From Podarcis muralis (taxonomy: Eukaryota), in NCBI RefSeq assembly GCF_964188315.1, contig NC_135656.1, forward strand, positions 107,012,001-107,076,000: a DNA stretch of 64,000 nt, read 5' to 3'. This document shows positions 30,495 to 37,704 of this stretch, piece by piece (position 1 is the first letter of the stretch; the number at the start of each line of letters is the position of its first letter). Under the pieces are notes generated by a model. The model did no database searches. It saw nothing but the letters and a program-made list of their open reading frames with translations, and was not told the origin of the DNA. Made by a program: the position numbers and the translations under genes.

Positions 30495-30971
30495 ATGTCA
30501 GGTCGCGGCAAGACAGGCGGGAAGGCACGAGCCAAGGCCAAGTCTCGCTCTTCCAGAGCCGGGCTGCAGTTTCCCGTGGGCAGAGTCCACCGGCTCCTGC
30601 GCAAGGGAAACTACGCCGAGCGCATCGGCGGCGGAGCGCCCGTTTACTTGGCCGCGGTGCTCGAGTACCTCAGCGCCGAGATCCTGGAGCTGGCCGGCAA
30701 CGCAGCCAGGGACAACAAGAAGAGCCGCATCATCCCGCGCCACTTGCAGCTGGCGGTGCGCAACGATGAGGAGCTGAACAAGTTGCTGGGCGGAGTGACC
30801 ATCGCGCAGGGCGGAGTCCTGCCCAACATCCACGCCGTCTTGCTGCCCAAGAAGACCGAAGCTCTGCATAGCGCGGCCGCCGCCAAGGCCGCGCCCAAGC
30901 CCGTCACCAAGGCCGCCAAAGGCACCAAGGCGCCCCTCAAGCCCAGCACCGCGCCCGTCGCGGTCCAGTGA
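30495..30971 (+). CDS. H2A: Histone H2A variant with long C-terminal tail, copy 1 (158 aa)
   Basis: Intronless [17 protein letters not shown] plus [36 protein letters not shown]; the ATG lies downstream of the TATA box, so the longer ORF-track start is not used. Confidence 0.95.
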
Positions 30972-31028
30972 GGCCAAAAGGCCAAATAGTCCGGACCACG
31001 CCCGGCGACAAAATAATCCAGACCCAAA

Positions 31029-31044
31029 GGCTCTTTTCAGAGCC
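31029..31044 (+). terminator. Histone 3' stem-loop, copy 1
   Basis: GGCTCTTTTCAGAGCC with AAA/ACCCA flanks; ATTAAA at 31092-31097. Confidence 0.95.
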
Positions 31045-32028
31045 ACCCACAACGCTCAGAGAAGAACGGAAACACTGCCCCCCAAAATAATATTAAACCC
31101 CTGCGCTCGCTCGCACATTTCCCCCGTTGATTCGAAAACGCCTCCCTATCATTTACGCCTTAAAAACACCTTGAGGCTGCTGGTGGTCACAACCGGGGAG
31201 TCTACAATCATCCCTGCTTGCATTACAAACTTCAGTCCCGTGGGAATGGAAATCCACCTTTTTGTGCCCATGATAGCTATTTCCTGGCACCCACGGCAGC
31301 ACATCTATATAAGCACCGTGGCCAACAAGGACTCGATCCCCTGCCTGGTGAAGCAGAGATACAGCCTGCAGCCAATAATTCTAGCAGCTATTCGCCTTTT
31401 TCTCTTGTAAACCAATTTATACCAAAAGACACTGATTCTGCACTGCTCTCCACCTGCTACATAATGCTAGGACACTTGGGGATTTGCAAAAAGTTCTGAA
31501 TCGTATTTTTAAAAAGAAGTACCACCAGCAGCAATGCCAAAGCATTCAACACACCCAGCCCCTTTCCTAGGATGCTGAAACAGTGACAGCTTGGAGTGAA
31601 ACGGGGGGGGGGGGTATGGGGTGTAATAATTTTGAAAAACAATAAAATAATTGGCAAAAAGAGGGGATTGTGGGGAAATACAATATCAGTTCTGGTACAA
31701 AAAACACAGGTTGCGCAGGTGCAATATATTGCCCTGTTTCCCTCTCTCCAGTGTTTCGAATCAGCATCCTATGAGAACCCAATGATTCACCAAAGCAGAA
31801 CGGACAAACTCATCTCTATCTAAGACGGGACACATGTGTCTTATACTTGTCAGTGGTTTCATCTCTTCCTCACTCCTGTTGTTAAAACTTTATCCTTCCT
31901 CTGCAATATGGCTGGGTGACATCTCTAGCAAGCCATACTACAGAGGAATGGTAAAGTTTTCAAGTCCAATTCAGAGCCTTCAAATATATCTGGGCTCCAT
32001 ATCTCAGCAGTATGAAGAATGAAAAGAT

Positions 32029-33644: not shown

Positions 33645-34121
33645 TCACTGGACCGCAACGGGCGCGGTGCTGGGCTTGAGGGGCGCCTTGGTGCCTTTGG
33701 CGGCCTTGGTGACGGGCTTGGGCGCGGCCTTGGCGGCAGCCGCGCTGTGCAAAGCTTCGGTCTTCTTGGGCAGCAAGACGGCGTGGATGTTGGGCAGGAC
33801 TCCACCCTGCGCAATGGTCACACCGCCCAGCAACTTGTTCAGCTCCTCATCGTTGCGCACCGCCAGCTGCAAGTGGCGCGGGATGATGCGGCTCTTCTTG
33901 TTGTCCCTGGCTGCGTTGCCGGCCAGCTCCAGGATCTCGGCGCTGAGGTACTCGAGCACCGCGGCCAAGTAAACGGGCGCTCCGCCGCCGATGCGCTCGG
34001 CGTAGTTTCCCTTGCGCAGGAGCCGATGGACTCTGCCCACGGGAAACTGCAGCCCGGCTCTGGAAGAGCGGGACTTGGCCTTGGCTCGTGCCTTCCCGTC
34101 TGTCTTGCCACGACCTGACAT
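33645..34121 (-). CDS. H2A: Histone H2A long-tail variant, copy 2 (158 aa, G8D)
   Basis: Same protein as copy 1 except [10 protein letters not shown]; several synonymous differences. Confidence 0.93.
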
Positions 34122-37100
34122 CTTCAAAGGCTCCTGACTTCTGTCTGGCCGAAAGAACGAAAGGAATGCAGCTGCTTGGAGGGGGCGCCTTTTATTATTT
34201 TCTTGAGCTGGCTGTGATTGGTCGAAGATGAGCAGGCCAATAGAAAAAAGGATTCTATTTCTAATCCAATGGGAAGCGAGTGCGCGCGGGTGGGGTCCTG
34301 GGAGAGGGGAACAGATTAATTTAGAATATACTTATATTGTAGAAGAATGGGCAAATAGTGTCTCTCTGCTTTCTGTTCATCCGACCCTTCCCTAATGTTT
34401 TTCTAATGGAAATATTGATGCTCGTGGCTTGTTGCTTTTTTACCCATACGATGTTTGGTGAGAGCTGGGGATATTTTGCAAGTTTTCTCTGCGTACAGGA
34501 TAGAGTTTTTGCCGATTCCTTTGCTTATACTGTACATTTCCGGCACGGGAACCTACATATCATTGGGAACATATTAATTTAGAATATATTTAATGTAGAC
34601 TGCCTCATTGGCTGTTTTCACGCAGCAACCCAAACCAATCCTTTGACGTTTCTGTTCCTTCCTGTTGGCTTCCACGCACTCGAGGTGGTTTGCAGTGTTT
34701 AATAATCTCAGATAGGAGTTTCTTGTCTTTACTCAGATCAATCTCGTGTCCCTCGCGCTGTATGAAGGGCAAATATACTTGCGTACCGAAGTGGAATTAG
34801 AAATTGAAAGGAAAAATAAAATAAAATAAAACCCGGAGGCAATTTATAAGGCGACTACCAATGCAAAGGCGACTGAGCAAAAACAAAAAAGGTTTCCCTA
34901 GCGAGATCATACTAGGGATGTATCATCTGGTAGTCCTATGAGTGGTATCGACTCGGGGATCGTGGATTCTTTGATACTGATTTAGCTTTGCCATAACTGC
35001 ACGTTTCAGTCCATGATTCCACAATACATTTATTAGGAGAAACCAAAATGTCACAAAACAACGAACAGGTTGTCGTGTTCACAAAGCTCTTCGTTATGTA
35101 AGAACAGCAAAGGCGAAGGGAGAGGCGGGAAAGCTGCCTTGATGTCAGCCTTTTTATGCACATACGCAAACTCCGGTTTTGTTTACTAATCATCCTGATG
35201 ATTAATACACGCCGGATTCTTTAAAAGTAGGTTCTGATTGGTCTACAACTTAGGTTAGTAATTTAAGAATAAGTAACAAAGGTCAATGAATGCATATATT
35301 TAAGCCAGACTGTTCCCACTGAGTAAAGGACGGGATAAGTACCAAAGGGGGGGGGGGGGAATCTGCCAACAAAACCTCACGCATTAATTTGGACATCCAG
35401 GAACAGAAGGATTTTGTGTGGTGTCAAAAATGTTTATACAAAAATGGGATGATTGAAAGGTGAAAGGAAGCCAGGATATTCTGTGGTTCTATAGTATTGT
35501 GCGGATTTGGCAATTGGTAAATGAAAAAGACTTGATAGTGGATAGCAATATGAATACAATAATAGCTAGAGACAGTTTATGGCGTTGGCTAATATGCTGG
35601 AATTGTCTGGAAAATACAGTGGCGCTTGGATCACATCTCAGTCCGGTCCTGATGTGAAGTGAAGGCAGAAATTCCTAAAATTGTTTTGCTGCAACTGTAA
35701 AACCTTTGACTGCTACAGAAATTAACAAAAGCCATGCTCAATCTGCCTCTCTGACATTCGTTGGCAATAACCGCCCTGAGATCTTATGATGAAGGGCAGT
35801 ATATAAATCGAATGAATGAATGAATGAATGAATGAATGAATGAATGAAATAACGTAGATTTGAAATCTTTCTCCAGGTTTCAGACTCTCAGTGAATTAAC
35901 CAGGAACAATTTATGTCTGCGCTTGTGAGAGAATCAAATCAGACGCACTATGTACATACAGAATTATCCTATTATTATTTCAATTTATTGGCCGCCTAAT
36001 ACAAACGCCCAGAATATTTCTGTGCACGTTTAAAGAAAACAATCAAATCTAAAAATGAAACAACACACCCAAAATATAACACAAAGGCAGCTCAGTATGA
36101 TATTCCTATTTCCTCAGATACCTGGAAGAAGTTGTATATCCTAGGTGTGTCCCACTGTATTCAGTGTCTTACTCACAGGTAGGAGGGCATACAATCTGTA
36201 AATTCTTAACATCTATAAATTTAAAAAAATGCAAGATAAATGTGGGACTGCAGCGGAAAAATAGCTTCTGTCAGAATATAATTGTTAGTTTTTTAAAGTT
36301 GCCATAAAGACTGCTGTGTTTGTGGCAACAGACGAGAACGTGGCTCCTCATCCACTTATAAGATTATACATAGGAGTAATTATTACTGAAAATGAAAAGT
36401 TTCTGAAATAGAATTTAAGTTCATGAAAAGTAACCATGTCGTAACCAAGATTATATTTTAAAAGGAAATATTACAATAAAATATCTCCTCAGATGTTATT
36501 TGCTGGTAACCTTCTTTTGCCTATGTGAACGTCAAAACTGATTAAATTTACAACGTCTCCCAGAAGTGTCTTTTTGAGAGGCGCAACTTTTCCCTCAGGC
36601 AGGCGAGTGAGGTGCCGGGGAGGAAAAAGGCGGGAAAATCTGAAGCGCTTGGCCGCCATTTCCCCCAACCGCCCAGGAGCATCAAGCCCCGCCCTCCTCT
36701 GCTTTCTCCTCCGCAACCTGCGCATATTTAGTCTTGGAGTCTAGAGGGGCACTTTAACGAAGTATCGCAGGAAATTGTCTAACGGAAACTCCGTAACAGG
36801 TTTCTTGGAGGACCGTTGTAGCTTTCACGCGCTGGAAATGTATAAGCAATGGAATCGGCTAGCAATTCAATGCACAGGGGAAACTTGCAAAATATCCCCA
36901 GCTCTCACCAAACATCATATGTGTAAAAATAAAAGGAAAAAAGCCAAAAGCATCAATATTCCCATTAGAAAAATATTCAGGAAGGGTCGGATGAACAGAA
37001 AGCAGAGATATTATTTGCCCTCCTAAATTAATCTGACAACCTTCTCTCAGGACCCCACCCGCGCGCACTCGCTTCCCATTGGTTTAGAAATAGAATCCTT

Positions 37101-37227
37101 TTTTCTATTGGCTTGTTCATCTTCGACCAATCACAGCCAGCTCAAGAAACGTATAAAAGGCGCCCACTCCAAAACACCTGCAGTCTTTTCGTTATTTCGT
37201 CGAGAAAGAAGTCAGGAGCCTTTGAAG

Positions 37228-37704
37228 ATGTCAGGTCGCGGCAAGACAGGCGGGAAGGCACGAGCCAAGGCCAAGTCCCGCTCTTCCAGAGCCGGGCTGC
37301 AGTTTCCCGTGGGCAGAGTCCATCGACTGCTGCGTAAGGGAAACTACGCCGAGCGCATCGGCGGCGGAGCGCCCGTTTACTTGGCCGCGGTGCTCGAGTA
37401 CCTCAGCGCCGAGATCCTGGAGCTGGCCGGCAACGCAGCCAGGGACAACAAGAAGAGTCGGATCGTCCCGCGCCACTTGCAGTTGGCTGTGCGCAACGAT
37501 GAGGAGTTGAATAAGTTGCTGGGCGGTGTGACCATCGCGCAGGGCGGAGTCCTGCCCAACATCCACGCCGTCTTGCTGCCCAAGAAGACCGAAGCTCTGC
37601 ATAGCGCGGTCGCCGCCAAGGCCGCGGCCAAACCCGTCACCAAGGCCGCCAAAGGGACCAAAATGGCCCTCAAGGCCAGCACCGCGCCCGTTGCAGTTCA
37701 GTAA
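37228..37704 (+). CDS. H2A: Histone H2A long-tail variant, copy 3 (158 aa)
   Basis: Core differs by I80V; tail [36 protein letters not shown]; CCAAT/TATAAAA promoter upstream. Confidence 0.95.

Follow-up and report, generated by a model that had tools for sequence, protein, structure and literature searches.

Which kind of histone H2A is encoded by three genes that lie together in a 64-kb stretch of the Podarcis muralis genome (hereafter the window), and that carry a C-terminal tail of 37 residues behind an ordinary histone core? The vertebrate H2A catalogue is thought to be nearly complete, with H2A.X, H2A.Z, macroH2A, the mammalian short H2As, H2A.J and the testis and egg types. The trio was first noticed in a reading of the DNA letters (hereafter the original prediction), which described three intact H2A genes of 158 amino acids (aa) and proposed a reptile-lineage variant. 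We conclude that these genes very probably represent a real, selected H2A variant of lepidosaurs. The explanation that we prefer overall goes further: the three genes would be working paralogues of a lepidosaur-restricted H2A variant family, whose tail acts by the mechanism proposed at the end of this text. We give this explanation, mechanism included, a probability of roughly 60%.

Gene copies, distribution and locus

The coordinates of the open reading frames (ORFs), the Pfam domains and a tblastn search of the window with copy 1, which matched exactly three genes and no fragment, bear out the three intact genes. Their products contain the Histone (PF00125, 7e-15) and Histone_H2A_C (PF16211, 1.5e-20) domains, match H2A chains of the Protein Data Bank (PDB) at E values of about 1e-70, and are present as exact sequences in NCBI under assembly GCA_964188315.1. 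With the Met of MSGRG counted as residue 1, copies 1 and 2 differ by 10 synonymous codons and a single replacement, G8D in copy 2, and their tails by four changes, all of them synonymous. Between copies 1 and 3 there are 18 synonymous differences in sense codons, a different stop codon and six replacements, one in the core (I80V) and five in the tail (A128V, P134A, A146M, P147A and P150A). The copies therefore differ mostly by synonymous changes, the tails of copies 1 and 2 included, as had been noted at the outset. They can be aligned over about 1.3 kb, and the tail-coding part of copy 1 contains internal 33-nt quasi-repeats. The G8D replacement hits a glycine that is invariant in 23 orthologues; copy 2, which also has AATAAAAG as its TATA box, could be the weakest copy, or else G8D could be a polymorphism.

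Orthologues, collected from a 90% cluster and a core-only search, were found in lacertids (Podarcis raffonei, P. lilfordi, Lacerta agilis, Zootoca vivipara), snakes (Pantherophis, Naja/Notechis, Protobothrops, Python), the amphisbaenian Rhineura floridana, iguanians (Sceloporus, Anolis carolinensis, A. sagrei), skinks and cordylids (Tiliqua, Hemicordylus) and geckos (Paroedura, Eublepharis, Sphaerodactylus, Heteronotia). All of them, and the tuatara homologue described next, are named in the databases only as "histone H2A-like" or "Histone H2A". The tuatara (Sphenodon) has a homologue with a generic core and a 38-residue tail, which resembles the tails of seven squamate genera with z values of 3.0 to 5.4 over shuffled controls, Podarcis and Anolis not being among the seven. 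An H2A phylogeny, suggested as a check in the original prediction, was run as a maximum-likelihood (ML) tree of the core; it had no starred branch and came out unresolved, so the tuatara is placed by the similarity of its tail alone. In this tree amphioxus groups with the squamates, which is convergence. From these comparisons we read the family as lepidosaurian, that is, shared by squamates and tuatara. The proposed reptile-lineage variant is thus indeed lineage-restricted, but it is seen in Lepidosauria and not in reptiles at large. The long "H2As" of birds, alligator, caecilian, fishes, lamprey and shark returned by the core search are annotation artefacts: they owe their length to N-terminal mis-extension, to fusion with H2B or H4, or to read-through, and were rejected as orthologues. 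A search with the full-length protein was dominated by tandem H2A-H2A fusions of about 260 aa that result from mis-annotation, and was uninformative on the tail. A separate, highly conserved H2A ends in KKTQSSKK (KKTQTSKK in caecilian); its core is identical in P. muralis, birds, alligator and caecilian, and it is regularly annotated with spurious N-terminal extensions.

The Podarcis array lies outside any histone cluster and has no H2B partner: no H2B, H3, H4 or H1 motif was found in any of the six frames of the window. From geckos to lacertids, the locus is kept between TRIM and Harbinger-derived genes, and the orthologues of gecko, Lacerta, Zootoca, Anolis, Sceloporus and corn snake all have a TRIM or PRY/SPRY gene beside them. 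Copy number varies. The gecko has two divergent copies between a PRY/SPRY gene and a DDE_Tnp_4 gene, Lacerta and Zootoca have the +,-,+ triplet of Podarcis between TRIM and DDE_Tnp_4, and the skink has two tandem copies. A single copy stands beside a TRIM or butyrophilin-like gene in Anolis, Sceloporus and corn snake, the corn snake neighbour being butyrophilin-like (Ig and PRY/SPRY). We take these TRIM and butyrophilin-like surroundings to resemble those of the mammalian major histone cluster and of the extended major histocompatibility complex.

In the codon tree, lacertid paralogues cluster by species and not by array position. Their synonymous divergence (dS) in the core is 0.05–0.18 within species and 0.18–0.34 between genera. 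Because the +,-,+ array is shared among lacertids, the copies evolve in concert by gene conversion, rather than having arisen by repeated triplication.

A nearly frozen core and a constrained tail

The core is intact at the acidic patch and the KKT site, as the original prediction had stated: the patch residues E57, E62, E65, D91, E92 and E93, and K119, K120 and T121 with the K119/K120 ubiquitylation site, are invariant in the 23 orthologues. The docking region is intact in the Podarcis proteins, and residues 1–122 are identical among lacertids, snakes and Rhineura. The likeness to H2A.X noticed at first also holds, with seven differences from human H2A.X in 121 residues (94% identity). The N-terminal 38 residues and the LLGGVT motif are those of human H2A.X, which is also the highest-scoring PDB match if one sets aside 5z23, an engineered H2A 1-B/E chain in which two stretches matched.

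These matches, and the fact that H2A.X mRNA also ends in a stem-loop such as that described below, would fit an H2A.X derivative that has lost the SQ[E/D]-hydrophobic motif and taken on a new role. We consider this origin very improbable. Ordinary H2As of fish and sharks have these core residues too, and in fish both H2A and H2A.X commonly carry LAVRN and LLGGVT; the core cannot separate H2A.X from canonical H2A, because the Danio H2A and Silurus H2A.X cores are identical. Moreover, the tail starts with TE-x-LH, like the canonical TESH(H/K) and unlike the TSATVG of H2A.X, and no orthologue has the SQ motif. The core changes that had been called private proved less so: YLSAE is found in other vertebrate H2As and KKSRI in some fish and sharks, whereas RIGGG and NIHAV are squamate-derived, yet amphioxus H2A also has GGG and NIHAV.

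The tail is 36–38 residues long in most genera. It begins with TE-x-(L/M)H and carries five to six lysines at fixed positions, for a net charge of +4 to +5; snake, skink and gecko tails have five lysines only and a net charge of about +4. Residues E122, H125, K131, K142, K145 and K149 are at least 90% conserved among orthologues. In most squamates the tail ends in (A/V/L)-(V/L)-KP-x-x-APVAVQ, and Podarcis shares the final 11 residues exactly with the gecko Paroedura. The reported VAVQ end and missing SQ motif were confirmed in Podarcis, and both SQ and SPKK are absent from all orthologue tails, as is any [ST]P dipeptide from 22 of 22 tails. The filler between the lysines changes with the lineage, being Ala/Pro in lacertids, Ser/Thr in snakes, skinks and cordylids, and Gly/Ser in geckos. 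The Ala/Lys/Pro-rich, H1-like look first described is therefore a feature of lacertids only. An origin of the tail from H1 found no support: lysine makes up 14–18% of the tail against an H1-like density of about 40%, and no Pfam family or PDB chain matched the tail alone. A search of 1.84 billion cluster representatives with a tail profile returned no hit, a weak test, since a profile of 40 positions is short and the variant probably sits within clusters of canonical H2A.

Some lineages depart from this pattern. The Anolis tail is expanded and rewritten. Rhineura floridana has a 33-nt in-frame tandem duplication (82% identical, at 10415–10480 of the retrieved stretch), giving a 48-residue tail and a 169-aa protein, and both of its paralogues end in SLVLV(VD/E) instead of APVAVQ. 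The second paralogue of Tiliqua scincoides (14507–14980 of the retrieved stretch) has nine core replacements, for instance in KSRTKGK, PVARVH, NYGKRIGGG, AVMEYL and TISQGG, and the Tiliqua pair has a tail omega (the ratio of replacement to synonymous rates) of about 1.4; selection on this second paralogue is either relaxed or new.

We next consider selection on the family as a whole, estimated by codon maximum likelihood on a fixed tree with 34–35 tail codons. Among nine lacertid genes, omega was 0.014 for the core and 0.212 for the tail (likelihood-ratio test of the tail against omega = 1, 25.1, p ~5e-7); among 15 squamate genes, it was 0.007 and 0.245 (52.6, p ~4e-13). These data show that the core is nearly frozen, and that the tail evolves faster yet under purifying selection. 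Neutral evolution of the tail, which the original prediction had named as evidence that would speak against a variant, is rejected. The same values bear on whether the family is simply an ordinary H2A isoform, whose tail would be a tolerated extension, made by short in-frame duplications and adding no function. The canonical-like core, the turnover of mid-tail composition between families (Ala-, Ser/Thr- or Gly-rich), the shifts in tail length by the Rhineura duplication and the Anolis expansion, and the Tiliqua pair would all agree with such an isoform. A tail omega of 0.21–0.25 does not, nor does a length of 36–38 residues kept with its lysine positions and terminal motif from geckos to lacertids, in genes retained at a separate locus across squamates and with a homologous tail in tuatara. 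We thus regard a functionless extension as unlikely.

Expression signals and other features of the window

Each Podarcis copy has CCAAT boxes at three places upstream of its ATG (about -150, -121 and -101), then a TATA box at -76, and the spacing is equal in all copies (Table 1). Downstream, a histone 3' stem-loop follows the stop codon at 52–57 nt, a distance that ranges from 39 to 62 nt across orthologues. The stem-loops of copies 1 and 2 exceed the gathering score of Rfam RF00032, which is 34; that of copy 3 scores below it, is absent from the Rfam hits and was recognized by alignment and pattern match. All of these signals, the CCAAT triplet, the TATA box and the stem-loop, recur in every squamate copy examined, in all species whose locus was read; promoter and stem-loop are kept in at least 10 genera. 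A classical histone downstream element, AAGAGCTG or GAGAGCTG, of the kind that serves the U7 snRNP, follows in Tiliqua, Sceloporus and Anolis. In Podarcis, a poly(A)-type hexamer lies about 45 nt past each stem-loop: ATTAAA at about 31092 in copy 1 and 33524 in copy 2, and AATAAA at about 37809 in copy 3. Neither hexamer turned up in the first 200 nt past the stop codon of the Sceloporus, Tiliqua and Anolis genes, and we therefore take those of Podarcis as probably due to chance, although a minor polyadenylated form could result. Taken together, the Podarcis genes bear the marks of replication-dependent histone genes, though they lie outside any histone cluster. From their promoter and 3' stem-loop, we predict an expression of the canonical, replication-coupled type.

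Table 1 Positions of the H2A genes, their control signals and the flanking genes in the window
Feature	Position	Strand	Description
H2A copy 1, coding sequence	30495-30971	+	158 aa + stop, intronless; ORF listing, translation, Pfam
H2A copy 2, coding sequence	33645-34121	-	158 aa; convergent with copy 1; carries G8D
H2A copy 3, coding sequence	37228-37704	+	158 aa; divergent from copy 2
Copy 1, tail-coding part	30858-30968	+	residues 122-158 (37 residues)
Copy 1, promoter	30343-30426	+	3 CCAAT boxes (2 inverted ATTGG, 1 CCAAT) and TATAAAAG ~76 nt before ATG
Copy 2, promoter	34190-34275	-	3 CCAAT boxes; TATA box is AATAAAAG (~34197)
Copy 3, promoter	37078-37160	+	3 CCAAT boxes and TATAAAAG
Copy 1, histone 3' stem-loop	31024-31069	+	GGCTCTTTTCAGAGCC, then ACCCA, then purine-rich stretch; Rfam RF00032, 34.7 bits
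Copy 2, histone 3' stem-loop	33547-33592	-	Rfam RF00032, 34.7 bits
Copy 3, stem-loop	37757-37777	+	same stem and loop, flank ACCTA not ACCCA; alignment and pattern match
TRIM gene (upstream synteny anchor)	18345-26658	+	RING/B-box exon 18345-18851, PRY/SPRY exon 26086-26658; Pfam
TRIM-type gene, further upstream	2404-2883 and 12761-13450	+	RING/B-box exon, PRY/SPRY exon
Harbinger-derived DDE_Tnp_4 gene (downstream anchor)	45575-46894	-	Pfam

These signals also bear on whether the copies are functionless, either as decaying duplicates or as an annotation artefact of stop-codon read-through. Decay might be suggested by copy 2, whose TATA box is weakened and whose G8D replaces a glycine that is invariant elsewhere, and by copy 3, with ACCTA behind its stem-loop. 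Every copy in every species is intact, however, with a core omega of 0.007–0.014 and with the promoter and stem-loop retained in the genera mentioned above. These conservation data refute decay or artefact at the level of the family, though less firmly for single copies, and as a whole we hold this reading to be next to impossible.

Could the variant instead be specific to the germline, the oocyte or the early embryo, where a long basic tail would pack or remodel the chromatin of gametes or cleavage stages? Other animals do have stage-specific H2As encoded by stem-loop mRNAs, such as the cleavage-stage histones of sea urchin, and the multi-copy array of lacertids would suit a bulk supply. By contrast, promoter and 3' end correspond to those of ordinary replication-type histone genes, and the core, 94% identical to H2A.X, is undiverged, unlike those of the known egg and testis H2As. 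We judge a restriction to these stages, which the original prediction had raised for germline and embryo, improbable.

Elsewhere in the window, ORF fragments at 16740–17210, 19010–19623 and 41152–41652 end in ...RRRGRQR(M/T)RWLDSV...LTKLRE.VEDR.AW.ALVHGVTK.RT.LN, which we take to be the C-terminal part of ORF2 of a BovB/RTE-type long interspersed nuclear element; the single fragment tested had no match in Pfam. A partial tRNA match at 62559–62616 on the + strand (Rfam 38.5 bits, model positions 8–63 of 71) is probably the head of a tRNA-derived short interspersed nuclear element and not a tRNA gene.

Relation to known H2As and possible action of the tail

With canonical H2A and H2A.X (human H2A.X, PDB 9q80_C; H2A type 1), the lizard proteins share the histone fold, docking region, acidic patch and KKT site, and their genes share the intronless structure, CCAAT/TATA promoter and 3' stem-loop. 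They differ in their tail of 37 residues, which stands where canonical H2A has about 9 and H2A.X about 22 and which has no SQEY, in the solitary locus, and in the squamate-specific I44, G46 and H113. Every orthologue lacks the C-terminal SQ[E/D]-hydrophobic motif of H2A.X and ends in APVAVQ or variants thereof. The macroH2A linker is likewise a Lys-rich segment placed right after the H2A docking domain, but the 158-aa lizard protein has only histone domains in Pfam and no macro domain, and the macroH2A gene is spliced and polyadenylated, as opposed to a stem-loop gene. Unlike in the short H2As (H2A.B/L/P/Q), docking region and acidic patch are intact, neither truncated nor eroded. The C-terminal domain of linker histone H1 shows no Pfam or PDB similarity to the tail and has the higher lysine density given above. 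Finally, the egg-type H2As (frog H2A.X-F, fish H2af1o) are also lineage-variable H2A paralogues with an altered C-terminus, whereas the long-tailed lizard genes are intronless, have a stem-loop and encode an almost canonical core.

The best functional analogy is plant H2A.W, also a canonical-like H2A with an extended, lysine-bearing C-terminal tail. That tail shields 10–20 bp of extra linker DNA from micrococcal nuclease, with a footprint of 155–165 bp against 147 bp (PMC6125630), and the Lys-rich linker of macroH2A is said, in a statement cited there, to lower the accessibility of extranucleosomal DNA. In contrast to H2A.W, the lizard tail has no SPKK/KSPKK, has a lower charge density (5–6 Lys in 37 residues), ends in the aliphatic APVAVQ instead of a basic motif, and is of independent, animal origin. 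We conclude that the family lacks the defining characters of H2A.X, H2A.W, macroH2A and the short H2As; by analogy, it would work most like H2A.W, though outside that class. A long-tailed H2A of lepidosaurs is apparently undescribed. A literature search that included accession numbers found no account of it, a soft negative given the thin coverage of subscription journals, and a match of the tail to a described variant, which the original prediction had named as speaking against its proposal, was found neither there nor in Pfam or the PDB.

How might the tail act? The mRNA would be made and 3'-processed like a replication-dependent histone mRNA, so that the long-tailed H2A would be produced with the bulk histones in S phase and would enter ordinary nucleosomes in place of canonical H2A. 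Since the C-terminus of H2A emerges from the particle where the DNA enters and exits, 37 residues can reach linker DNA and the H1 region; the mildly basic tail (net +4 to +5) would exit there and contact linker DNA or alter H1 binding, by analogy with the H2A.W tail. This linker-DNA mechanism is tentative, at odds that we place slightly short of even, and compaction of chromatin by the long tail is likewise suggested by analogy only. The aliphatic end looks unlike a DNA-binding motif and more like a protein docking motif, and the conserved KP-x-x-APVAVQ may thus constitute a short docking site for a protein partner.

Several points weigh against the explanation that we prefer. The tail is much less basic than that of H1 or H2A.W and has neither SPKK nor [ST]P, so its DNA binding may be weak, and its aliphatic end is lost or altered in tuatara, Anolis and Rhineura. 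The selection tests involve few codons, a tree model that gene conversion violates and, at depth, saturated dS. An AlphaFold2 model built from the orthologue alignment was too poor to be used (predicted local distance difference test, 46). Regarding expression, Podarcis has only a purine-rich AGAGAAGAACGGAAAC downstream of the stem-loop and no match to AAGAGCTG, look-ups of the exact proteins returned no transcript-like contigs, and the two snake Logan contigs with the H2A protein extend more than 500 bp upstream of it and seem to be genomic. As to its restriction to lepidosaurs, no turtle, crocodilian or bird orthologue was seen among the search matches, which does not prove absence.

Retaining, with these points counted, a lepidosaur-restricted family of working H2A paralogues as the best explanation, what would it mean? 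If the variant is conserved over the roughly 11,000 lepidosaur species, with replication-type signals and a selected 37-residue tail, it would be a real further class of H2A. Extended H2A tails have so far been studied mainly through plant H2A.W and the macroH2A linker, and the long-tailed H2A would offer a natural animal test of how such tails act on linker DNA and H1. Its invariant core beside a fast but constrained tail would provide a clean case for selection on disordered histone tails, and the small lacertid array one for concerted evolution. A more far-reaching proposal, speculative and in our opinion rather unlikely, is that the long-tailed H2A forms a substantial part of replicating lepidosaur chromatin, as an animal counterpart of H2A.W with an independent origin some 250 million years ago; its tail would reach linker DNA, and its aliphatic C-terminus would recruit a reader or chaperone. 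If this were true, lepidosaur chromatin would have a property that mammals and birds lack.

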